In this document: positions 9,602 through 61,694 of the stretch, piece after piece
How the letters are laid out: each line of letters begins with the position of its first letter
Position numbering within the stretch: the first letter of the stretch is position 1
IMG/VR virus record: IMGVR_UViG_3300034072_002211
Location: 186,001 to 250,000 of that record
Length of the DNA stretch: 64,000 nucleotides
Reading direction: 5' to 3' (one strand)
The notes under the pieces: generated by a model
Database searches by the model: none
The model's input: the letters and a program-made list of their open reading frames with translations, nothing else
Told to the model about the DNA's origin: nothing
Translations under genes and position numbers: made by a program

Positions 9602-9721
9602 TGTTTGGTATCGGCGCCCGACCAAGGACAATACCAACTGTCCTTTCTAACTAACTCCAATTGGTAGTTTGTCAACAAGTTTGTGTGCGTTACTTTGTGG
9701 TTCTAACTATGCCTAGAACTG

Positions 9722-9793
9722 TGGTTAGAAGTATGGTTAGAAGTATGGTTAGAAGTATGGTTAGAAGTATGGTTAGAAGTATGGTTAGAAGTG
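9722..9793. repeat. 6 x 12-bp tandem repeat TGGTTAGAAGTA in an AT-rich non-coding region
   Basis: five exact copies plus a sixth ending in G. Confidence 0.95.
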
Positions 9794-10091
9794 TGTTTCT
9801 ACCTACTAGTCTATGGAGTGTAATAGGTAGGACAAGTTAGTAGTCTGCAACAGTGTGCCCACTACAGGCCCATGAAAGGCTTGGATTTTTCGGTGACTAG
9901 TTGTTCTCTAACTACCAAAGGTAGGGGCAGTCTTGTAGTGTTTTCTACCTAGTACACTTGTGTATTAGTTTGATAACACACAACTTCAATCTACAATGCT
10001 TTTTTGTGAAGTAGCAGTTGGACTCTTACCAAAGAAATCTCGAAGTCAGACTGCTAAGGTAGTCTGACTTGATGTAGTGTCTGAAGTGTAG

Positions 10092-10802
10092 TTAGAACCG
10101 CTTGGTAACTCCAAGAACAAGTTCAAGAGTAGGCGTGTCGCGAGTCAGACCCACGTTGGCATTGAGGTCGATTTCTACGTTTCGCGAGGCAGTCCACACG
10201 GTTGTGAAGTCTAGGCTGGCTTGTGTTTGCCCCGCGCTATGCTGCGCGAACACTTCAATGGTCCCGCCTATGGGTCCGTAGAGGGTCTGATTCACACCCA
10301 CAGCGCCACTGATCAAGGGAGTGGGCAACACGAATACCGTTGGGCTTGCGTAGAGCTGTGTAGAGGGCGACACATCATAGGTTGCGCCCAGCGCAACGCC
10401 TGCGCCCAAGCGGCCCTGAGAAGCGTTCTGAGAACCCGTAGGCAGCACAAGCATGGGCTGAACTGCTAGGCTCAGCTGATCATCCTTGATGTTGCGACGC
10501 AGGGCCAAACGCAGGTCGCCTTGCCCCACACGCGAACCCTTGCGGACCCAAGGGCTCAAGCCAACTTGGACTTCGGTGTTCTCGTTGAGACCAAGGCGAA
10601 CCACTGTGTCGCCAAGTAAGAGAGTGGAATCAGCATCGTCGAACCAATCAGTCAGGCTGACTTCAACTTGGACATGACCGGGATCAACAACACACGGTTG
10701 GATCGCACCACGATCAGGACAGAGCGGCTTGAGGTCCTGAGCCACGGCAGGACTGGAAAGCATCAAGGCAAGAAGGGCGAGCCTACTTACCAAAACGCTC
10801 AC
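10092..10802 (-). CDS. outer-membrane beta-barrel 'transporter' (MetA-pathway/phenol-degradation family-like)
   Basis: signal peptide, LCPDR...PCVVDPGHVQVE motif, alternating beta-strands, C-terminal Phe. Confidence 0.7.
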   Translation of the reverse strand: MSVLVSRLALLALMLSSPAVAQDLKPLCPDRGAIQPCVVDPGHVQVEVSLTDWFDDADSTLLLGDTVVRLGLNENTEVQVGLSPWVRKGSRVGQGDLRLALRRNIKDDQLSLAVQPMLVLPTGSQNASQGRLGAGVALGATYDVSPSTQLYASPTVFVLPTPLISGAVGVNQTLYGPIGGTIEVFAQHSAGQTQASLDFTTVWTASRNVEIDLNANVGLTRDTPTLELVLGVTKRF

Positions 10803-26518: not shown

Positions 26519-27040
26519 TCACCAGCTGAAGGCGCCGAAAATCGCCTGGGCGTTGAAGTTGATGTTCGAGCTCTGGAACGACGCAGCGTCGAAGTTGACC
26601 TCCGAGTCTGCCTCATAGTCGAGCGTGAACGAGTTGGTGAACTGGCTCTGGCCGAAGTTGACCACCTGCCCGGTCAGCGATCCGTTGCCCTGGACCGCCG
26701 CGTTCAGATCGGCGGTGTTGCCGCTGAGGCTGTAGGCGTTGCCTGCGATCTGGCCGGCCACCGAACCGGCGAGGCCGTCCATGTGGAACTGAGCCGCCGA
26801 CGCGCCGTTGCCGAGCGTCAGGTTGCCAACGAAGCCGCTGCCGGATTCTGCCGAAAGCGTGTTGTCGATGTTGATATCGATGCTCTGCGACTGCGACGTG
26901 TCGAAGGACGTGCTGGCACCCGACTGCAGATTGCCGTTGACATTGCCAGCGCCAATCACGCCACCGGCGCTCTGAGCTGAAGCCTGTCCCGCGACTGCAA
27001 GCGTCAGAGCCGCAGCGGCCCCCATCAACAGTTTCTTCAT
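26519..27040 (-). CDS. secreted Gly/Ser/Asn/Gln-rich beta-repeat protein
   Basis: signal peptide (AGQASA), curlin-like composition, followed by a hairpin at about 26487-26510. Confidence 0.75.
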   Translation of the reverse strand: MKKLLMGAAAALTLAVAGQASAQSAGGVIGAGNVNGNLQSGASTSFDTSQSQSIDINIDNTLSAESGSGFVGNLTLGNGASAAQFHMDGLAGSVAGQIAGNAYSLSGNTADLNAAVQGNGSLTGQVVNFGQSQFTNSFTLDYEADSEVNFDAASFQSSNINFNAQAIFGAFSW

Positions 27041-27070
27041 TGTCGATCTCCTCTATTGCCTAACAAGTCG

Positions 27071-27085
27071 TTAAGCAAGCGTTAA
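27071..27085 (-). promoter_or_regulatory. CtrA-binding box TTAA-N7-TTAAC
   Basis: minus strand TTAAcgcttgcTTAAC, just downstream of a TTGACA promoter of gene 26519..27040. Confidence 0.65.
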
Positions 27086-27251
27086 GCTGTAACGCCTTTG
27101 GGAGGATGTCAACAGGATTCGCAACTAAAACTTGAATTAATCGTTACATTATCTTTGCGGTCGCAGCAAAGGTGTAATAAAGTTGCTTTATCGCTCTTGC
27201 GTAATGGCTACCCTGTTAAGGAAGGTTAACAGTTCCTAATTTCACCAGCAT

Positions 27252-27530
27252 TTACGGCTTGGTGAGGAACTGGAGTATGATTTCGGCCTTTTCTTGCTCC
27301 TCAGGCTCAACATAGATAACGAATTCCGCCGATTCATCCGTTAGCAGGGCCTCGTCCCCCAGCAGAATTTCGAACATACCAGTCAGCCGTTCGTTGAACA
27401 CTTGAAGCAGCTGATAACGCAAAGCCTGCCAGCCGTCCGTGAACTTCAGCACGAACGTGAGCCGCTTGGCCGTAGCCATGAACTCGATAGGCGCGAGAGG
27501 ATCACGGCCGGGATAGAGAAGGTGGTCCAT
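27252..27530 (-). CDS. hypothetical protein
   Basis: operonic ORF. Confidence 0.65.
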   Translation of the reverse strand: MDHLLYPGRDPLAPIEFMATAKRLTFVLKFTDGWQALRYQLLQVFNERLTGMFEILLGDEALLTDESAEFVIYVEPEEQEKAEIILQFLTKP

Positions 27531-34357: not shown

Positions 34358-34735
34358 TCATATGGAATCGTTGCGAGTTTTCACCACAAACCTCTCCGGC
34401 TCTGAATCTCCCAACTTGACCAGCGCCGCTATGTCAGATGGGACGATCACATAAAACTCAACACGTCGGAGCGAATCATCGTCCGATCCTGCCACCCTCA
34501 TCATAGGACCAACCGGTCTCCATTCAAAGCCCAGAATGGCATTGTGCTTAAGGAATTCTCCTAACCTAAGTAAGGCAATTCCCGTGGCTCCTCCCTCAAC
34601 GAGCCAGCGCAAATGCCGGTGCTCTGTCTCCCAGTCGCTCGTGTCCGTGTAGATGCCGCTGTAACACACTGTAGTCGCACACAAGTGGACCCGCGTGTGA
34701 CCCTCTGAGAGCTCTGCCAGGGTGCTCATATCCAC
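34358..34735 (-). CDS. hypothetical protein
   Basis: operonic ORF. Confidence 0.6.
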   Translation of the reverse strand: MDMSTLAELSEGHTRVHLCATTVCYSGIYTDTSDWETEHRHLRWLVEGGATGIALLRLGEFLKHNAILGFEWRPVGPMMRVAGSDDDSLRRVEFYVIVPSDIAALVKLGDSEPERFVVKTRNDSI

Positions 34736-35094
34736 GGACGCAGACCCTTGAGGATCTCTTCGCGTTCGTTGACGTCAATGGGCCCAATGCCAAGAGCCGT
34801 GATCATAGGACGCGGGAACACGGTCTTGCCTGCATCCTTGATCAGAGCCGTGCCGCACTTTCCCTTGTAGAGACGGCTCAGCTGATGGAGCGTCTCCTCG
34901 CTGGCGTGTAGGCAAACCTTGCCCACGATACCAGTGTCGCGATAGGCTTTGACCTGCTCTGGATGGTTGTCCATTGCGTCGAAGATAGCCTCGGTGAATG
35001 CGTGACCGATCTGGGCACCCATCTTTCCGCGGTTACCGCCTGCGGCTTTCACTGCTTCGTCGCTCACGATACAGTAGAGTTTGATATCAGGCAC
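34726..35094 (-). CDS. pth2: peptidyl-tRNA hydrolase type 2
   Basis: GKMGAQIGHA, KVCL, IKDAGKTVF, TALGIGP. Confidence 0.9.
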   Translation of the reverse strand: MPDIKLYCIVSDEAVKAAGGNRGKMGAQIGHAFTEAIFDAMDNHPEQVKAYRDTGIVGKVCLHASEETLHQLSRLYKGKCGTALIKDAGKTVFPRPMITALGIGPIDVNEREEILKGLRPWI

Positions 35095-35467: not shown

Positions 35468-35497
35468 TCCTCAGAGTAACAGGAGGTTGATCCTAGA

Positions 35498-35653
35498 TCA
35501 ACCCTTTAGGATGACGCAAGCTTCCTTGCAGCAGGTGCCGCACTTGACCGCGCAGCCTAGGAACTGGTAAGCTTGGTGGGGAGATTTCGCGCCGGCCTGC
35601 TTGGCCTTAAGGATCTTTCCCTCGTTCAGGTTGTTACAAACACAGATGACCAT
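35498..35653 (-). CDS. Bfd-like [2Fe-2S] ferredoxin (51 aa, not in ORF track)
   Basis: MVICVCNNL...GCAVKCGTCC: CxC...CGxC; GGAGG RBS. Confidence 0.8.
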   Translation of the reverse strand: MVICVCNNLNEGKILKAKQAGAKSPHQAYQFLGCAVKCGTCCKEACVILKG

Positions 35654-35674
35654 AAACCCTCCACCAGTATCGCA

Positions 35675-35682
35675 CCTATTTA
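35675..35682 (-). promoter_or_regulatory. putative late promoter TAAATAGG
   Basis: intergenic, upstream of the Bfd-like gene. Confidence 0.5.
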
Positions 35683-35701
35683 AGCGATCAGGTGAGAGTT
35701 G

Positions 35702-35980
35702 TCAAATGCGTTGTAGCTTGAGCATCATGGCGCTCGCCATGCCGTGCTTCTTGGCGTGATAGTAGATCTCGCCTTCTCGATAGAACTGGAGGAGAGGGCT
35801 GGGGATAACCTTTGTGGCATCAGCGCCAGCTACGATAAAGGCTTCAAGAGTTGAAGCCGTTTCCTCCCATGCTTGTCGCATGTTGAGACCTTCGAACCGC
35901 CGCTTCCCAGGGCTGATATAGACTTGGCGGGCCTCGTGACAGGCCCGCTTTGTCCGTTCCCTGAGGTCTTTGAGAGTCAC
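35702..35980 (-). CDS. hypothetical protein
   Basis: GTGA coupling; ends AMMLKL. Confidence 0.65.
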   Translation of the reverse strand: MTLKDLRERTKRACHEARQVYISPGKRRFEGLNMRQAWEETASTLEAFIVAGADATKVIPSPLLQFYREGEIYYHAKKHGMASAMMLKLQRI

Positions 35981-38275: not shown

Positions 38276-38908
38276 TCAGACTAGATCCCAGTCGGGATCC
38301 TTGACGTCCTGACGGGCATCGAAACGTGCGAACATGGCGCGCATGTCCTCGTAGAGCTTGGGATCGCCCTTGGTGAAGCCGACCCACTGCTCCTTCTTCT
38401 CCTGGACCCACTTGACCGCGAAGCCAGGATCCTGCGCGACGATGCTGGGCATGTTGGACTTCATATCCGCCAGCTTGACCGTCTGCTGCTCAGGTTCAGC
38501 GAGCCAGGAATGCTCCTTGTCCATGTTCTTTCGGAACTTGCGGTTGCCATCCTCGGGCTTCGAGACGTCAGTGACCTGATAGACGCCGGCGACGACCTTC
38601 TGGGCCACTTCGCTGCCGAATTCTGCGAATGCCGCACCCACATCGCTGAGCGTCTTGTGAGTGTCCTCGACCACATCGTGGCAGATGGCGACTGCCACCG
38701 TGATCGCATCACCGTGGATCGACCGTGCGACCATCTTGGCCACCTGGATCGGGTGAACCATGTAGGGCGCCTTGCTATACTTGCGGCGCTGCCCACCCAG
38801 CACAGGGTCAGGCTTCAGCGCATGGTTCTCATGCGCGTCTGTGGCGAACTCGATTGCCCGCAGGACAATCGGATCCTTCATCACGTCATAGGTTGCTTCT
38901 TCTGTCAT
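38276..38908 (-). CDS. HD-domain (p)ppGpp hydrolase-like protein (SpoT-HD/Mesh1-like)
   Basis: AIEFA..AH...QRRK....PY..HP..VA, CHDVVEDT, VKLAD..SN. Confidence 0.85.
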   Translation of the reverse strand: MTEEATYDVMKDPIVLRAIEFATDAHENHALKPDPVLGGQRRKYSKAPYMVHPIQVAKMVARSIHGDAITVAVAICHDVVEDTHKTLSDVGAAFAEFGSEVAQKVVAGVYQVTDVSKPEDGNRKFRKNMDKEHSWLAEPEQQTVKLADMKSNMPSIVAQDPGFAVKWVQEKKEQWVGFTKGDPKLYEDMRAMFARFDARQDVKDPDWDLV

Positions 38909-39634: not shown

Positions 39635-41329
39635 CTAAGCGTCAACCTGTTCGTATTGACGTAACAGCGCAATGGTGTTTCTGAGCCCGTAAGCCACTGT
39701 GAAAGCACCGAAACGTGGCCCATCGCTTGAACCCAAGAGACATTCGTAGAGAGCTTGGAACCATGACCGCAACGGCTCAAACTCATGCTTCTTGCCGACC
39801 TCATAGACCTGATACTGATAATGCTCGGCGGTCATGTTTTCGAGCATCAGAGAGAAACGGGTCGCAAGCTCACTGAATGCTGCCCGCTCCTTCTCGGTGG
39901 GTTCTCGGCGAGAACGCTCAAACAGCCCCTTGTCGGTTGCGTAGGCGATGACCTTGGGAGCCATTTCCCGCGCATAAGCCGCGGTCGCGTCGGCGAACTC
40001 ACGACCCTGCATCAAGTAAGCGAGCAGGTTCTCTGGCTGCTTGGCCTGAGCCACAACAGCCAAGTTGAGCATGAGTCCATGGGAGATGTCAGAGCTCAGT
40101 GGCTCAGGCAATTCCACGCGGAAGTGCCACGTGGCGTCATCGGGCGTCGTCTCAGCCTTCTGCCGCAACTTGACATACTGGTCTTCCAGCTGGGGCACGA
40201 TCTCTCTGTAGAGCTTCTTTGCCGCGCGTGGGTTCTGAAACATGAACAGCATCAGGGAGCCAGTCGACCCATAGGTCAACCACTGCTCGACCGTAAAGCC
40301 GTTGCCCTTGCTCTTGCTGATCTTTGCGCCGTTTTCGTCCAGGAACAGTTCATAGGTCAGGTTGAGCGGAGGGGTTCCGCCGAGGATCCGACAGATCTGG
40401 TTGGAAGCCTTGACGCTGTCAATGAGGTCCTTGCCAGACATCTCATAGTCCACGTCAAAGTAGACCCAGCGCATCGCCCAGTCGACCTTCCACTGAAGCT
40501 TGGCATTGCCGTTGTGGCTCATCTGGCCACAGTGCTCACCGTCGTCCGTGACCCAGCCGATGTATCCACGTGCGCCAGTTGCCTCGGCCTTGACCTGCAG
40601 AACAGGGCCCTTGCCACACCAACGCGGCATAAACGGACTGTAGGTCGCCTTGCGATCATCCCCCAGCGTGGCGAGCATGATCTCCTGAATCTTGTCGAAG
40701 TTGTCCCAGACGCGGTTCAGCATCTCGTTGAACTTGCCGGACTTGTAATAGCGCGAGGAGCTCACAAAGCTCACAGTGCTGCGGTCGGGCGATGCTCCCA
40801 CTTGGCCGCCATTGTAGTCCTTGAGGATGCGATCCACAAACTCGCAGAGCTTGTCGTTGTTGGCTTCGGCAAAGGTCATGGGATCAACCATGACTTGCGT
40901 GACACCCGGATCGTTGGAATAGGGCGAAGGAACCTCACTGAGCGGCAGGCCCAGATACTCGTTCATCCACTCGGGCATGTCGTCAGGGACCTTACGCATT
41001 GCGTCATAGTCATCCGAGAACATGATCAGACGGGTCTTGTAGGCGTTCTGCGTGAGCTCATTGAAAGCGCGCATCACCCAGAGGGTGCGGACCACCTCAC
41101 CAAAGGTGCCGATATGCGGAGCGCCCGAGGGACCATAGCCGGTCTCAAAGGTCACCACATCACCAGGCTTCTTGCCCTTCTTCTCGATATGAGCGAGAAG
41201 GCTGCGGGCCTCCTGGAAGGGCCAAGACTTTGCCTGGTCGAAAATGGTAGCCTCCTTTGCCTGCTCTGCTTTGATGGCACGGATCCGCTCGATGAGGGCT
41301 TCCTCTTCCCAGCGGTTCATCATAGCCAT
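39635..41329 (-). CDS. lysS: class I lysyl-tRNA synthetase
   Basis: TGYGPSG.PHIGT, KLQWKVDWAMRW, EMSGKDL, KISKSKGN, GPRFG. Confidence 0.95.
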   Translation of the reverse strand: MAMMNRWEEEALIERIRAIKAEQAKEATIFDQAKSWPFQEARSLLAHIEKKGKKPGDVVTFETGYGPSGAPHIGTFGEVVRTLWVMRAFNELTQNAYKTRLIMFSDDYDAMRKVPDDMPEWMNEYLGLPLSEVPSPYSNDPGVTQVMVDPMTFAEANNDKLCEFVDRILKDYNGGQVGASPDRSTVSFVSSSRYYKSGKFNEMLNRVWDNFDKIQEIMLATLGDDRKATYSPFMPRWCGKGPVLQVKAEATGARGYIGWVTDDGEHCGQMSHNGNAKLQWKVDWAMRWVYFDVDYEMSGKDLIDSVKASNQICRILGGTPPLNLTYELFLDENGAKISKSKGNGFTVEQWLTYGSTGSLMLFMFQNPRAAKKLYREIVPQLEDQYVKLRQKAETTPDDATWHFRVELPEPLSSDISHGLMLNLAVVAQAKQPENLLAYLMQGREFADATAAYAREMAPKVIAYATDKGLFERSRREPTEKERAAFSELATRFSLMLENMTAEHYQYQVYEVGKKHEFEPLRSWFQALYECLLGSSDGPRFGAFTVAYGLRNTIALLRQYEQVDA

Positions 41330-47477: not shown

Positions 47478-47831
47478 TTACTCGCTCTTTTCGGCGACCG
47501 TGACCTCGGCACCTTCGACGGCCAGCTTGTCGTCGGCCGACGCTTCACCGGTGGTCAGGGCGAACCAGCCATACTTGTCGGCGCGCAGGCCGAACTGAGC
47601 GGTCGCGCCGAGGATGCCGGCCGCGCCCAGCTTCTCGAGCTGCTTGTCGGTGATCTCGACCTGGACGCCATTCTTGCCCTTGGTCTGGAGCTCGCTCAGG
47701 ACGTGAGGGCCGGCCTTGCGGTCGGTCGGACGAACCATCAGGGTCCCGTCCTTGACGTCCATACGAAGCTTGGCGCCGTTGCGCCCGTGAATTGCCGAAG
47801 TTGCCTGGGTGTTGAAAGTCAGAATACGCAT
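47478..47831 (-). CDS. AbrB/MazE-like beta-barrel protein, 'KYGWF' paralogue
   Basis: GAKLRMDVKDGTLMVRPTDRK; GLRADKYGWFAL. Confidence 0.75.
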   Translation of the reverse strand: MRILTFNTQATSAIHGRNGAKLRMDVKDGTLMVRPTDRKAGPHVLSELQTKGKNGVQVEITDKQLEKLGAAGILGATAQFGLRADKYGWFALTTGEASADDKLAVEGAEVTVAEKSE

Positions 47832-48087
47832 TTCGATCTCCGTGTTACACAACATAGCCGCCGCCGTGCTGTTGTGGACACATTTAGCGGTCCTGTCCTA
47901 AACGTCAACACCTCTGGAAAGGATTTATCGAAGTTTTTCAAACAGGTGTCACCAAAGTCAAGCAAAAATTGCTGTTTCCTGCGGCAAATGTGCTACTTCA
48001 TAGGTAGCAAGAAAGGACCAAAAAGTTGGCTCTGGTGGACAGCCTATTGAACCAAAGGTAAGTGGATTATGTAGCCAGGACCTAAGT

Positions 48088-48528
48088 TTAGGCGGGCTGG
48101 AGGGCGCAGTGCTCTGGCCACGGTAGAACGCGGTAGCCTTCCTCGAAGTCACCGACGCGGAAGATGTTGCTGTTGGGAAACGGTCCGCGGGAATTGCCGT
48201 AGACATCCACGAACTCCGTGCGATAGAACGAATCCTCGCTGGGAATCTGGCACTCGAAATCACTGTAGATGATCAGAGTGTCGTGATGCGAAATGAAGCG
48301 ATTGTCCATCCACCGGAACACCTCCATGAGGTCGGTGCCGCCGAAGACATTCTGAAACAGAGCTTCATGGCCCGCCGCCTTGACATCACGCCAGCGCCGT
48401 GGCTTGCTGACTTCTGTGCCAAACATGATGATCATATCATCATCCTTGGCGTAGGTCCTGAGCGCGCAAAAGACCTTCTGCCTGACCACGTAGAAGCTGC
48501 CACTGTTGTCGATCGCATGGATTCTCAT
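48088..48528 (-). CDS. VWA-like domain protein
   Basis: AIDNSGS (MIDAS DxSxS), GGTD, IIYSD. Confidence 0.75.
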   Translation of the reverse strand: MRIHAIDNSGSFYVVRQKVFCALRTYAKDDDMIIMFGTEVSKPRRWRDVKAAGHEALFQNVFGGTDLMEVFRWMDNRFISHHDTLIIYSDFECQIPSEDSFYRTEFVDVYGNSRGPFPNSNIFRVGDFEEGYRVLPWPEHCALQPA

Positions 48529-49290: not shown

Positions 49291-49303
49291 AATGCCTCGA
49301 ATA

Positions 49304-49332
49304 TTGATCTGGTATCCAAGTCCGTATATAAC
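49304..49332 (+). promoter_or_regulatory. sigma70-type promoter
   Basis: TTGATC-N17-TATAAC. Confidence 0.65.
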
Positions 49333-49338
49333 GAGAAC

Positions 49339-49637
49339 AGTTGGGCAGCAATGCCTAACTTGACTAGCTTCCCTGCTCAGTGGGTCCCTCACTTCCTGGG
49401 GTTACGCGGAAGAGCTGGGTGCCGGGAATGACGGAGGCGCAGTAGGGTTGGCCGACTACACTGGAGCCAAGGGACTGCGGGGAACCTGACAGAACCGTGG
49501 GAATACGAGAGCCCGCCCGATAGGGGCTTCTGTGGTTGCTGGACCACGTAAAACTTGGAACCAGCGCGGGGTAATCCGCCGAGGGCAACGCACCCTCAAG
49601 AGCCGGGCAATGGTCTAGTCAACCGTGCGCCCGGCTC
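49339..49637 (+). ncRNA. structured ncRNA with long-range pseudoknot, unknown class
   Basis: 5' hairpin with GCAA loop, several internal hairpins, 3' hairpin whose loop CTAGTCA complements TGACTAG at 49361-49367. Confidence 0.7.
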
Positions 49638-49659
49638 AATACCCTCGCTAAATAGGAAT

Positions 49660-49751
49660 GGAGGAGACGCCTAATGGGTATGGGCATTCTCGCATATGGG
49701 CAGGCGTAACCAGCGAGAAATGGGAAGCGGGTTCAAATCCCCGCCCCTCCA
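49660..49751 (+). tRNA. tRNA-like element with enlarged 23-nt anticodon loop (pseudo-tRNA)
   Basis: acceptor GGAGGAG/CCCCTCC-A, D-stem GCCT/GGGC, TTCTCGC/GCGAGAA stem, GGGTTCAAATCC T-loop; no canonical anticodon. Confidence 0.55.
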
Positions 49752-50090
49752 CTATACCGAGAAGTCCTCGGTCGGCACATAGCCACTGCCAGGCGATTCC
49801 TGTGCCACAGTAATCATCACCAGCGGATCACGATCCACGGGCTGACCCATGCGCTCAGGCAGCGCAAGGGACCACGTGATGTCCTTGATCCGATACTGCG
49901 AACCGTTGAGGAACACATAGGATCCCTCGGCAGGCAGGGTGACCAGCATTGTGTCGCCCATGATGTGCCAGCGATCCACGTCCTTGGGATCGAGACGCTC
50001 GCCCTTCTCCATGGCCTTCTCGACTTCCTGCTGGACTTCGAGATAGTTCTTTTCGCGCCGGAAGATGACTCCCGTGAAAGCCTCGATCAC
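49752..50090 (-). CDS. hypothetical phage protein
   Basis: GTGA coupling. Confidence 0.7.
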   Translation of the reverse strand: MIEAFTGVIFRREKNYLEVQQEVEKAMEKGERLDPKDVDRWHIMGDTMLVTLPAEGSYVFLNGSQYRIKDITWSLALPERMGQPVDRDPLVMITVAQESPGSGYVPTEDFSV

Positions 50091-52358: not shown

Positions 52359-52691
52359 ATGTCAAATGAGAACAGCCTCACCAGTATTTACGTCATTGGA
52401 CCTGAGGGTGGTCCCTACAAGATTGGTTATGCCCAGGACCCCAAGGCTCGTCTGAGCAATCTACAGGTGGGGCAGGCTGTTGAGCTCAAGCTTCACTATG
52501 AGGAAGCCACGGAGACAGCGACCGCCAAGGTTATTGAAAAGCTGATCCACAAGCAGATAGCCCATAAGCGAGTGCGTGGCGAATGGTTTGATGTTTCGCT
52601 TGAGGAAGCCATAGGTGAGGTCAGGTTCGCATTCATCCGTTGGGAGGACGAACCGAACCTGACCTTTAGGTATAAGAGGAAGTTGCTTTAG
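52359..52691 (+). CDS. GIY-YIG-like (T5orf172/MUG113) protein
   Basis: IYVI...YKIGY...P..RL..LQ, EKLIH, RVRGEWF. Confidence 0.85.
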   Translation: MSNENSLTSIYVIGPEGGPYKIGYAQDPKARLSNLQVGQAVELKLHYEEATETATAKVIEKLIHKQIAHKRVRGEWFDVSLEEAIGEVRFAFIRWEDEPNLTFRYKRKLL

Positions 52692-53140
52692 GCGCTGAGC
52701 AGCGCCTTCACAACACCGCTGGCCTTGCCCTTGTCGAGCGAGGTGCCGAACGTCGCAGCCAGGTGCGCCATGACGCCGCCCATCTGCTTCATGTTGCGCT
52801 CCGGCAGAGTTGCGATGAAGCTCTCGGCCTCGCCGCGAATCTCATCCTCGCTGGCCATCTGCGGCAGCAGACCCTCGAGGATCTCGAGCTCGCGCAGGCT
52901 GTCGGCGTGGTCGGGCTTGTGGCTCAGGGTGTCCTGGACCTGCTTGATGCCCTTCTGGATGGCGCGCAGAGCGTCCTCGTCGTCGGCCTTGACCGTCGAC
53001 AGATCCTGCTTGGCCTTGACCGCGCGCTCCTTGGCGTTTGCGGTCGCTGCGCTCTGAACACTCAGGAGGGCACCGGCCAGCGGGTCACGCGACTTCCGCA
53101 GTTCGAGGGTTTTCGCGTTCAACTCGGCGAGCACACTCAC
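52688..53140 (-). CDS. GatB/YqeY domain protein
   Basis: ELEILEGLLPQMASEDEI...KQMGGVMAHL...LDKG. Confidence 0.85.
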   Translation of the reverse strand: MSVLAELNAKTLELRKSRDPLAGALLSVQSAATANAKERAVKAKQDLSTVKADDEDALRAIQKGIKQVQDTLSHKPDHADSLRELEILEGLLPQMASEDEIRGEAESFIATLPERNMKQMGGVMAHLAATFGTSLDKGKASGVVKALLSA

Positions 53141-60827: not shown

Positions 60828-60911
60828 TTGTTGACTCCGGTTATATCCGATCTCTTGCCACCTGTATAAAGAGGTGAGGCAAGCGAGTCAACTCTGGTTT
60901 TCACCTTTTTT

Positions 60912-61196
60912 TGCTCGATCTAGATTCACCGGTGACTCTATCCCAGCCGAGCCACACCATCCTCCACGAGATCCCGAACCAACCGGGGTACCGCTTCATC
61001 GGACCTCACCGCGCCAGACTACTTTGCTTGGGTCTCGAGCCCCGCCCGTTTCATCTCAGTGAATCGATCTCTGCTGGAGGGGGTCCTCATTCCCTCACCG
61101 AACGGAAGCACCCATGAAAGCAGGATAGGCCGTAGCTAAAGCCGCCGTTCAAAGCACCAAGAACCTGCGGGCTTTCCCCACCTGTTCCTCAGCAGT
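60912..61196 (-). ncRNA. candidate structured ncRNA (~285 nt)
   Basis: promoter TTGACA-N17-TTAACA (61233-61205); long-range helices; GAAA tetraloop. Confidence 0.55.
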
Positions 61197-61248
61197 TATG
61201 GTGATGTTAAGGTGAAACTGCGGTGCTTGTCAAGCTGCCAAACAGAAA

Positions 61249-61694
61249 AGTTTTGGGTTGCAAGACCGGTTTCCCCTCAATCCCGGCACCGCCCCGTCCC
61301 AGGGCCTCACTGATGCGTCCTTGTTGTCGGGCTCAGGCTTTGTCATCATCCCATTTGGCCTAACACGGAAAGCCCTAAGGCTATACCGATGCCGCTGGGC
61401 GTCTTCCTTCCATCTCGCCAGACCACTCATTAGAAAAACACCTGAGCAGTCCCAACGGGGTACGATCCCGTTGCACAACTTGCAACCCAAAACTCCCGAT
61501 TCAATGTCTGGCGTCCACACTACCAGCACCGGCTTGACAGGGCTATTCAAGAACCCCTGGGGACTCCATCCCCTTGCCTAAAGCACCATAGGTGAGCACA
61601 CACTCAACAGGGAATTGAACCCCGCGCCGCTTGAGGATCTGCTTCCACGTCCGGCCGGACCGCTTCCACAGGGCCACGGCCCCATCATCGAATC
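61249..61694 (-). ncRNA. candidate structured ncRNA (~450 nt)
   Basis: promoter TTGACT-N17-TAGAAA (61729-61701); perfect 16-bp inverted repeat 61249-61264/61479-61494; T-arm-like hairpin near 61601-61635. Confidence 0.55.

Follow-up and report, generated by a model that had tools for sequence, protein, structure and literature searches.

A clade of huge bacteriophages carries a conserved gene, with its own sigma-70-type promoter, for a ~300-nt RNA whose covariation-supported fold is held together by several pseudoknots and which is followed by a tRNA-shaped module that cannot decode. The unit matches no family in Rfam 15. It was examined in a 64-kb stretch of phage DNA (the window: 64,000 nt, positions 186,001 to 250,000 of IMG/VR record IMGVR_UViG_3300034072_002211), where it occupies the largest gap between ORFs, at 49291-49754, on the plus strand between two minus-strand genes. 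Eleven distinct versions were recovered at a syntenic locus from related huge-phage contigs (24-481 kb), in phages whose flanking proteins are only 33-72% identical. They share a promoter, an RNA of ~220-330 nt (RNA1) and a tRNA-like module (TLS) of ~92 nt, in the same order. In Table 1 and below, labels such as L004 denote the related phage loci; L118 and L120, the two most divergent members, form group C, and the other nine are the main family.

Table 1. Features of the RNA gene, with positions in the window and their conservation among the 11 members.
Feature	Position	Strand	Sequence or structure	Conservation and support
Promoter, sigma-70 type	49304-49332	+	-35 TTGATC (49304-09), 17-nt spacer, -10 TATAAC (49327-32)	TTGNNN-N17-TATAAN with exactly 17 nt of variable spacer in all of the first 8 members and in L124 and L118; L120 has TTGACG, a 19-nt spacer and TATGAG
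P1	49339-49360	+	9-bp hairpin AGTTGGGCA-GCAA-TGCCTAACT at or next to the predicted 5' end	Hairpin of variable length and sequence in 9 members; group C has the pseudoknot strand at the 5' end instead
K-a	49361-49367	+	(U)GACUAG, 5' strand of the long-range loop-to-5' pseudoknot; TTGACTAG at 49360-67	GACUAG invariant in 9 members, AGACCA(A) in L118/L120; pairs with the P-c loop in 11/11
P2	49372-49384	+	Small hairpin CCUGC-UCA-GUGGG	Conserved block; only one-sided or wobble changes and one mismatch in L006, so support is weak
P3 and candidate pseudoknot PK-A	49386-49412	+	P3 CUUCC/GGAAG (49392-96 / 49408-12) with conserved loop UGGGGUUAC; candidate H-type PK-A, CCCU 49386-89 with GGGG 49398-401	P3 strands differ in 7-8 of 8 members and stay complementary; PK-A gives 4-6 bp at a homologous position in 7 of the 8 members tested but is not resolved against alternatives
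P4 and P5	49419-49459	+	P4 49419-23 / 49436-40; P5 49442-45 / 49456-59	Covarying stems, e.g. CCAG/CUGG, CUGG/CCAG, CCUG/CAGG; cognate strands pair, non-cognate strands do not
Variable central region	49460-49531	+	40-72 nt among members; structure in the window unresolved	Lengths differ by non-multiples of 3; in L006, L014, L011 and L101 it forms two further H-type pseudoknots with compensatory changes
PK-D	49532-49565	+	P8 GUGGU/ACCAC (49532-36 / 49543-47); loop GCUGG (49538-42) pairs with CCAGC (49561-65) immediately 5' of P-a	Same order and position in 11/11; the pseudoknot helix differs in each of the first 8 members (10 variants among the 11), all pairs canonical
P-a	49566-49579	+	GCGGG-GUAA-UCCGC, GNRA-tetraloop hairpin	Loop GUAA, GAAA or GCAA in all 11; stem compensated in L065, L124, L118 and L120
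P-b	49581-49597	+	GAGGG/CCCUC (49581-85 / 49593-97), 7-nt loop	97% of cells paired, compensatory changes; different stems in L124, L118 and L120
P-c and K-b	49600-49637	+	Long hairpin GAGCCGGGC (49600-08) / GCCCGGCTC (49629-37; GCCCGGCUC as RNA) plus inner AUGGU/ACCGU; apical loop CTAGTCAA (49615-22) carries K-b CUAGUC(A), 49615-49621	11 of 14 pairs changed on both sides; the loop is YUAGUC in nine members and UGGUCU in the two most divergent
Linker / TLS leader	49638-49659	+	UAAAUAG (49649-55); U at -1 (49659)	UAAAUA(G/C/U) in 7 of 11, absent in L077, L124 and group C; U at -1 in 8 of the 9 main-family members (C in L004; A in both group-C members); length 6-22 nt in most, 61 nt in group C, about 200 nt in L011
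TLS	49660-49751	+	Acceptor 49660-66 / 49744-50 with A49665·C49745 mismatch; D arm 49668-86; long closed 'anticodon' arm 49687-49720 with apical GCAGGCG 49700-06; T arm 49727-43; discriminator A49751; C49752 follows	A6·C67 and GCAGGCG invariant in 11
GTCCCT/AGGGAC	49384-89 / 49470-75	+	Helix present in the window	No positionally conserved counterpart in relatives
ACAGAACC	49493-49500	+	Resembles RNase P CR-V	Shared only with L124 and partly with L004

A preliminary description made from the window sequence alone had proposed a promoter, a 5' hairpin, a series of helices and a 3' hairpin whose loop is exactly complementary to a stretch near the 5' end, directly upstream of a tRNA-like element. 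This observation is confirmed, as every listed element lies where it was placed. In the window alone, however, the evidence is only moderate. The fold z-score is -3.0, and an 8-bp Watson-Crick match of the P-c loop is reached by 3.7% of shuffled loops, or by 22% if G·U is allowed. The comparative evidence is decisive, because the 11 homologues keep nearly all of these elements with compensatory changes. Two corrections are needed. The GTCCCT/AGGGAC helix is not conserved, and the local alternative PK-A sits at a homologous position. Additionally, the feature does not end at 49637, since the tRNA-like module belongs to the same conserved unit. The second pseudoknot, the universally conserved H-type PK-D, had also been missed.

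Covariation is strong in both modules. In the TLS cloverleaf, 93.9% of cells pair and 12 pairs show double changes (0/500 shuffles; slid controls 5 cells or fewer); with 11 sequences the values are 93.0%, 15 of 25 pairs and 46 cells. In the three 3' hairpins, 95.3% of cells pair and 14 of 24 pairs show double changes (0/500 shuffles). RNAalifold counts 25 of 50 pairs as compensated. In MAFFT alignments the covarying helices of the 5' and central parts fall into different registers, and these helices were instead picked by eye and then checked by script, so their support is partly by construction. The loop-to-5' pairing, for which absence of covariation had been named beforehand as a refutation, shows a compensatory U-A to C-G change in the most divergent pair of members, although this rests on one divergent lineage. 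In group C, the only Watson-Crick site of 5 bp or more for the P-c loop is the 5'-terminal AGACCA. The strand is fixed by many invariant G·U pairs, which would be A·C on the other strand, and by a canonical T loop. The window's own T arm is irregular, with 3 bp and a 7-nt loop or 5 bp and an 8-nt loop. Indels in non-multiples of 3 show that the region is not coding. A simple promoter scan missed the promoter because it requires T at hexamer position 6, and no intrinsic terminator was found.

Searches for known families returned only weak tRNA-type hits on the TLS. Rfam models gave no hit at the gathering score over the whole window, and searches at E up to 10 on the locus in four members yielded only sub-threshold tmRNA, tRNA-Sec and mascRNA hits. 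No RNase P (bacterial A/B, archaeal or type T), SRP, GOLLD, ROOL or raiA model matched. The only hit in the window is tmRNA at 12.7 bits (E = 0.006; gathering score 47), covering only 49698-49754, on the T arm and acceptor 3' strand. ARAGORN found no tRNA or tmRNA at the locus in 9 sources. BLAST of the locus against 50,697 phage records found no match. A pattern scan of metagenomes returned 33 loci, among which the family members were already in hand; a genome scan gave 3 unrelated hits; and a viral scan with a pattern that also missed the known members found only real tRNAs. As far as these searches reached, the unit is confined to a clade of 250-480-kb phages that also carry their own translation genes. 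Class I LysRS (39638-41329), PTH2 and YqeY genes lie in the window. No SmpB domain was detected among the 84 ORFs of the window, which covers only part of the 277-468-kb genome.

The TLS has the top half of a canonical tRNA, with a 7-bp acceptor, a D arm with GG and a T arm with a UUCRANY loop. A covariance model built from it also detects genuine phage tRNAs at 21-36 bits. However, it lacks the 5-bp anticodon stem with a 7-nt loop (U33, anticodon), and position 8 is A or C instead of U. The closed arm is 7-8 bp plus an irregular 19-20-nt apical part that carries the invariant motif. A tRNA with a small BHB-type intron was ruled out, because removing any apical segment does not leave a Y32-U33 seven-nucleotide loop.

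The best explanation, which we hold at a probability of roughly 0.55, is a stand-alone non-coding RNA gene of this phage clade, read from its own promoter on the strand opposite to its neighbours. The sequence comparison establishes the two conserved modules, namely RNA1 (about 49339-49637), a compact fold of hairpins and H-type pseudoknots in which the 3' hairpin loop pairs with a single-stranded stretch near the 5' end, and a tRNA-shaped element in which a long closed arm replaces the anticodon stem-loop. Transcription itself, the joining of the modules in one primary transcript of about 420 nt, and processing are inferred. In this view, host RNase P would cut at 49659/49660, and 3' trimming and CCA addition would follow after A49751, releasing a stable RNA1 with a defined 3' end and a tRNA-like RNA of about 92-95 nt, as MALAT1 and mascRNA are separated in animals. 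Indirect signs of processing are the U at -1, C at position 74 in 11/11 (CCA is encoded in only 2), and an AU-rich leader similar to that of a genuine tRNA-Lys gene in the related phage locus L013. No transcript data support these steps: among the sequencing runs found, none of the RNA runs holds this phage, the two labelled RNA look like DNA, and only relatives' DNA is present. Furthermore, in L011 a stretch of about 180 nt carrying a 58-codon opposite-strand ORF separates the modules, which together with the longer group-C linker suggests that co-transcription or RNase-P-defined ends may not be essential. The invariant apical motif shows that the TLS is more than a processing handle. It is speculative that both products act in the phage's takeover of host translation or tRNA metabolism, and that the tRNA-like RNA engages a specific partner through its apical GCAGGCG and its invariant G5-A6·C67-G7 acceptor base.

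The preliminary interpretation, a new ncRNA class that is possibly catalytic or involved in tRNA processing, is thus partly supported. A real, structured and conserved non-coding RNA gene with its own promoter and no Rfam match is borne out, and the long-range pseudoknot survives comparison. Catalysis and a role in tRNA processing have no evidence beyond structural complexity and position next to the TLS.

Among the alternatives, which are all unlikely, two independent genes lying side by side survive best, as a structured sRNA and a degenerate tRNA gene or phage attachment-site remnant. The L011 insertion and the group-C linker show that the junction is not constrained, and phage tRNA genes are common in relatives (8 in L013). 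However, the pair co-occurs in the same order in 11/11 members spanning deep divergence, and relatives that lack RNA1 at this locus (L013, L115 and L117) also lack the TLS there. The TLS is under strong purifying and compensatory selection with an invariant non-tRNA apical motif, and is therefore neither a decaying pseudogene nor an att fragment.

A self-assembling 'ornate' RNA is slightly less likely. Like ROOL and GOLLD, the RNA is phage-borne, large and highly structured (bioRxiv 10.1101/2024.12.08.627333). ROOL and GOLLD are RNAs of unknown function from phages and prophages that are typically found beside tRNA genes, and this RNA too lies next to a tRNA-type element. The core of the K-a/K-b pairing, CUAG, is palindromic, and sequence analysis cannot distinguish intramolecular pairing from pairing between molecules that would build an RNA-only multimer. 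However, no ROOL or GOLLD model matches, the RNA is about 300 nt instead of about 580-800 nt, its partner is a non-decoding tRNA-like element instead of real tRNAs, and in group C AGACCA/UGGUCU is no longer palindromic.

That RNA1 is a ribozyme, for instance an RNase-P-like or self-cleaving RNA that matures or modifies the adjacent module, is doubtful. A multi-pseudoknot fold closed by a long-range pairing, with invariant GNRA loops, is typical of ribozymes, and a tRNA-shaped potential substrate is always adjacent (11/11). Bacterial RNase P RNA is of the same size class, also has a long-range pairing that closes the core and GNRA loops, and acts in relation to tRNA-shaped substrates. However, no Rfam ribozyme or RNase P model hits even at E up to 10 in the four members searched, the universally conserved RNase P regions are absent, the ACAGAACC string is restricted to the window's nearest relatives, and in L011 the module lies about 180 nt away from the TLS. 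A still more far-reaching and very unlikely possibility is that RNA1 is a natural ribozyme or RNA machine that matures its tRNA-like partner, charges it or presents it to the ribosome. This would make the pair a phage-borne, protein-independent tRNA-handling system, or a tag-less tmRNA-like ribosome effector built on a topology different from that of tmRNA.

A divergent tmRNA (ssrA; RF00023 and clan) or tmRNA mimic, whose charged tRNA-like part would enter stalled ribosomes while the pseudoknot string plays the role of PK1-PK4, is also improbable. A string of H-type pseudoknots next to a tRNA-like domain is the tmRNA hallmark, the setting is likewise bacterial or phage with translation genes nearby, and huge phages are reported to encode tmRNAs and SmpB (PMC7162821). 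At least one H-type pseudoknot is present in 11/11 members and three in four members, but this feature alone is not diagnostic. A stop codon sits in the P4 loop of all of the first 8 members, and in 5 of them it is in frame with the conserved (A/G)CGUUG. However, the alanine identity pair G3·U70 is absent, as pair 3:70 is C-G (8), A-U (2) or U-A (1), never G·U. The acceptor 5' strand is internal, preceded by about 320 nt of conserved RNA, and the TLS is a complete closed cloverleaf with a covarying D stem and a closed 7-8-bp arm at the 3' end of the unit, whereas in tmRNA the tRNA-like domain is formed from the two RNA termini and lacks a D stem and anticodon arm. No reading frame or stop lies at a constant phase relative to any conserved anchor. 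Frames following UAGUC in the P-c loop, ending at the linker UAA/UAG or running into the P4-loop stop are out of phase between members or give unrelated peptides of 4-6 residues, and the stems there covary at the nucleotide level. A cis-regulatory leader, or an antisense or divergent-promoter region of the flanking protein genes, fits only in that the RNA occupies an intergenic gap with its promoter 14 nt from the start codon of the upstream divergent gene, and is very unlikely: no conserved plus-strand ORF follows (the 51-codon ORF at 49658 is not conserved, and L004 has no ATG there), both neighbours lie on the other strand with the downstream one convergent, G·U pairs fix the strand, and L077 and L065 keep the RNA without the upstream gene.

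Other systems offer analogies. In MALAT1/MEN-beta, a long structured RNA is directly followed by a non-decoding tRNA-like element (mascRNA/menRNA; RF01684) that RNase P can cut to make the long RNA's 3' end, and the equivalent arrangement is kept in 11/11 members. The TLS scores 17.2 and 22.0 bits with the mascRNA model, below the gathering value of 42.5, so that this is analogy and not homology. Those are animal nuclear lncRNAs, and here the invariant apical motif suggests a function of its own. Tobamovirus and tymovirus 3' UTRs likewise place consecutive pseudoknots immediately 5' of a tRNA-like structure that engages tRNA enzymes. Those, however, are the aminoacylatable, CCA-ending 3' ends of eukaryotic plus-strand RNA virus genomes, whereas this is a dedicated gene in a dsDNA phage with a cloverleaf-type TLS. 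Bacillus cereus tRNA-Other is a tRNA-shaped RNA that does not work in translation, is poorly lysylated in vitro and has regulatory effects (PMC3399842), but it keeps an anticodon loop and is chromosomal. B. cereus also has a class I LysRS (PMC2916919), as does this phage, although a link between the phage LysRS and the TLS would be conjecture on present evidence.

Large, pseudoknot-rich RNAs with strong covariation and no known function are rare, and several have turned out to be ribozymes, riboswitches or RNA-only assemblies. This unit couples a compact RNA to a tRNA mimic whose decoding arm has been replaced by an invariant motif, which points to a dedicated RNA tool for manipulating host tRNA or translation machinery. 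At about 300 + 92 nt it is small enough for probing, cryo-EM and RNase P or aminoacylation assays, and the 11 sequences give a covariation-supported model with two testable pseudoknots. A predicted fold of the neighbouring 161-aa protein had a pLDDT of 39.6 and was unusable. Pairings between the two modules were also examined. The only recurrent complement in RNA1 of the invariant GCAGGCG, CCUGC in P2, is lost in 5 of 11 members, and pairing of the TLS loop GUAACC with the P3 loop GGUUAC is perfect in the window (8 bp) but not kept in relatives.

The window is part of IMG/VR contig IMGVR_UViG_3300034072_002211 (277 kb), from a subsurface metagenome, and the neighbouring protein is also recorded on a 468-kb contig. 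Its ORFs are dense, short, and mostly on the minus strand. PHROG hits include a helicase and tail-fibre-type proteins, and Pfam hits include a class I lysyl-tRNA synthetase (LysRS). This ORF layout and gene content are the look of a huge phage. The structured RNA lies in the largest ORF-free gap of the window, between a minus-strand gene and a convergent minus-strand gene. Five other gaps of 400-450 nt lack an ORF of 70 or more codons, but none resembles the RNA family in an nhmmer search. An ORF with a weak HNH-endonuclease PHROG hit (phrog_1314, E = 5e-5) lies about 0.8 kb from the RNA gene, and relatives carry a T5orf172/GIY-YIG-type ORF a few kb away.

Coordinates of the RNA gene, its elements, and the surrounding features (window positions unless a locus is named)
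Feature	Position	Strand
Largest ORF-free gap	49291-49754	
Minus-strand gene bordering the gap (start)	49290	-
Convergent gene bordering the gap (stop codon)	49752-54	-
RNA1, structured RNA module	about 49339-49637	+
P3 loop, GGUUACGC	49398-49409	+
PK-D, loop of P8	49538-42	+
PK-D, strand immediately 5' of P-a	49561-65	+
tRNA-like module (TLS)	49660-49751	+
TLS acceptor A·C mismatch (6:67)	49665 / 49745	+
TLS apex, GCGUAACC	49698-49713	+
TLS T arm	49727-49743	+
Permissive tmRNA hit	49698-49754	
PTH2-type peptidyl-tRNA hydrolase	34729-35094	-
HD_4 domain protein	38279-38908	
Class I LysRS	39638-41329	-
Class I LysRS in a relative of the L006 lineage	L122 3974-5554	
Neighbour gene used to find divergent members	47481-47855	
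ORF with weak HNH-endonuclease hit	48091-48528	-
YqeY-like (GatB C-terminal-like) protein	52691-53140	-
Insertion between RNA1 and TLS in L011	L011 3467-3648	minus strand of locus (= RNA sense)
ORF called in the L011 insertion	L011 3474-3650	+
Related phage lacking the RNA at this locus, and tRNA-Lys genes scored by the TLS model	L013 99-197 and whole locus; L128	
Other gaps of 400-450 nt	2182-2623, 9648-10094, 26978-27401, 35468-35872, 60828-61257	

Every sequence element listed in the preliminary description is present at its reported position. On its own, however, the window gives only moderate support. The + strand folds with z = -3.0, against -2.3 for the other strand. The 8-bp complementarity between the loop of the 3' hairpin and the 5' region is reached by 3.7% of shuffled loops when only Watson-Crick pairs are counted, and by 22% when G·U is allowed. 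Rfam 15 finds nothing at gathering thresholds in the whole window, and ARAGORN finds no tRNA or tmRNA. In permissive mode, the only relevant Rfam hit is tmRNA, at 12.7 bits.

Comparative evidence came from three routes. Homologues of the upstream 161-aa protein led to syntenic loci that all keep a gap of about 450 nt, and the gap aligns. DNA patterns taken from invariant stretches recovered further huge-phage contigs in IMG/VR, and homologues of another neighbour gene gave three more members, two of them very divergent. In total, 11 distinct sequences are available: the window and loci L004, L006, L011, L014, L065, L077, L101, L124, L118, and L120, the last two forming the divergent group C. 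They lie on contigs of 8.5 to 481 kb, and their flanking proteins are 33-72% identical. The metagenome pattern hits added no family member beyond these, and the pattern hits in bacterial genomes were unrelated. Within what could be searched, the element is confined to this phage clade, with one copy per locus.

All of the first eight members, plus L124 and L118, have TTGNNN, exactly 17 variable nucleotides, and then TATAAN, whereas L120 has a weaker -10 (TATGAG) and a 19-nt spacer. Invariant G·U pairs, such as the closing pair of P-a and the U·G in the D stem, would be A·C on the other strand; together with a canonical T loop, they fix the + strand. The central region varies in length by non-multiples of three and no + strand ORF is conserved, so it is not coding. 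No intrinsic terminator was seen. No RNA-seq run holds this phage, and the two runs labelled as RNA appear to be DNA carrying a relative's tRNA-like element. Transcription is therefore inferred, not shown.

On the MAFFT alignment of eight members, the specified TLS cloverleaf has 93.9% of cells paired and 12 pairs with changes on both sides. No shuffle out of 500 reaches these values, and slid controls give 3 cells or fewer with a change on both sides. A covariance model built from the module finds the divergent L118 and L120 copies at 48.9 and 43.3 bits. On the 11-sequence alignment, which is fitted to the model, 93.0% of cells pair and 15 of 25 pairs have double changes. Acceptor pairs 2-4 covary freely, whereas the A6·C67 mismatch, flanked by invariant G5-C68 and G7-C/U66, is kept in all 11 modules and looks like a recognition element; G5, A6, and G7 are themselves invariant in all 11. 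The D stem and T arm are canonical in shape, although the T arm of the window and of L006 has lost one G relative to the other members. This one-nucleotide slip leaves either a 3-bp stem with a 7-nt loop or a 5-bp stem with an 8-nt loop and a 6-bp acceptor, and it arose in two separate lineages. In place of an anticodon stem-loop there is a 7-8-bp covarying stem capped by an irregular 19-20-nt apex, whose core GCAGGCG is invariant in all 11. The discriminator is A (G in group C), C follows it in 11/11, and CCA is encoded only in L065 and L124. The base at -1 is U in 8 of the 9 members of the main family. The covariance model also picks up genuine phage tRNAs at 21-36 bits. Among real tRNAs it scores tRNA-Lys genes best (36.1 and 29.9 bits), partly through a shared AU-rich leader (AAUAAAUA...) that resembles the TLS leader. 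L013, a related phage that lacks the RNA at this locus, carries eight ordinary tRNA genes within 8.4 kb. The TLS is thus a tRNA derivative that should be handled by tRNA-processing enzymes but cannot decode.

In RNA1, the three 3' hairpins are P-a (always a GNRA tetraloop), P-b, and the long P-c. They have 95.3% of cells paired and 14 of 24 pairs with double changes, with 0/500 shuffles reaching this. RNAalifold on the whole RNA finds compensatory changes in 25 of 50 predicted pairs. Because MAFFT puts covarying helices of the 5' and central parts in shifting registers, these helices were located by eye and verified by script. P1, P3, P4, P5, and P8 occur in the same order in all eight members; almost every member has different strand sequences, and all pairs but one are canonical. 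Cognate strands form longer runs than non-cognate ones (for example, 5.4 versus 2.6 for P3). However, this support is partly by construction and ranks below the counts made on the alignments. A pseudoknot absent from the preliminary description, PK-D, pairs the loop of P8 with the five nucleotides immediately 5' of P-a and is present in 11/11 with ten different sequences. Four members have two more H-type pseudoknots in the central region, with compensatory changes, the corresponding region of the window being unresolved. The proposed GTCCCT/AGGGAC helix is not conserved. A local CCCU/GGGG pairing is positionally conserved in 7 of 8 members but remains ambiguous.

In nine members, both strands of the loop-to-5' pseudoknot are invariant, with GACUAG on the 5' side and YUAGUC in the P-c loop. 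The only change is C/U at 49615, opposite the invariant G49367 (G-C or G·U), which is consistent with pairing but uninformative. The flanking U-A pair of the window is not conserved, so the core is 6 bp. In the two group-C members, the P-c loop is (A/U)UGGUCU, and its only Watson-Crick complement of 5 bp or more in the RNA is AGACCA(A) at the extreme 5' end. This gives 6 bp in L118 and 7 bp in L120, covering the whole loop. When the sequences are aligned on the shared GAC/GUC, window pair U49365-A49617 becomes C-G, and G49367-C49615 becomes A-U in L120. In group C, the 5' strand lies before, not after, the first hairpin, and it is therefore either a shifted homologous site or a re-invented one. 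Both cases argue that closing the fold by this contact is selected. The evidence rests on one divergent lineage, and the pairing is considered likely (about 0.75) rather than proven.

These results identify a genuine, previously undescribed structured RNA family with an attached tRNA mimic. The structure reported in the preliminary description is confirmed and extended. Its interpretation is supported in part: the claim of a new ncRNA class holds, while a catalytic or tRNA-processing role remains a hypothesis. Large phage ncRNAs linked to tRNA-type genes, and tRNA-like processing modules, are already known, and the family is placed beside them because no new principle has yet been shown.

The analysis establishes a conserved promoter, two conserved structured modules in fixed order, and their folds. 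How the RNA is made and matured is an inference from these features. In this view, there would be one primary transcript, RNase P would cut at 49659/49660, and 3' trimming plus CCA addition would follow after 49751, yielding a stable pseudoknotted RNA1 and a tRNA-like RNA on the pattern of MALAT1/mascRNA. However, the junction is flexible. In L011, about 180 nt carrying a 58-codon ORF on the opposite strand is inserted between RNA1 and the TLS, with the UAAAUAG leader staying with the TLS, and group C has a 61-nt linker. A function in host translation or tRNA metabolism is speculative and is suggested by the tRNA mimicry and by the phage's own class I LysRS (PF01921, E = 4.6e-94; archaeal-type), PTH2, and YqeY. 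The LysRS gene, which lies next to an HD_4 domain protein gene, is also present in a relative of the L006 lineage, and YqeY stays about 3-4 kb from the RNA locus in most relatives (L003/L004, L006, L115, L118, L120, and L124). A precedent for a non-translating pseudo-tRNA that is weakly lysylated exists in Bacillus cereus (PMC3399842).

Self-assembling, ribozyme, and tmRNA-like readings are not excluded but have no positive evidence. The RNA is not a tmRNA itself: there is no G3·U70 and no conserved tag frame, the acceptor 5' strand is internal, the cloverleaf is closed, the family models do not match, and no SmpB is found in the window. It is also not RNase P RNA, GOLLD, ROOL, raiA, SRP, or any other Rfam family, nor is the TLS a decoding tRNA. 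The invariant TLS apex has no conserved complement in RNA1, so it more likely meets a protein or another cellular RNA. In the window only, the apex GCGUAACC is perfectly complementary (8 bp) to the P3 loop GGUUACGC; L101 keeps 6 bp through a matching change, but the other members do not.
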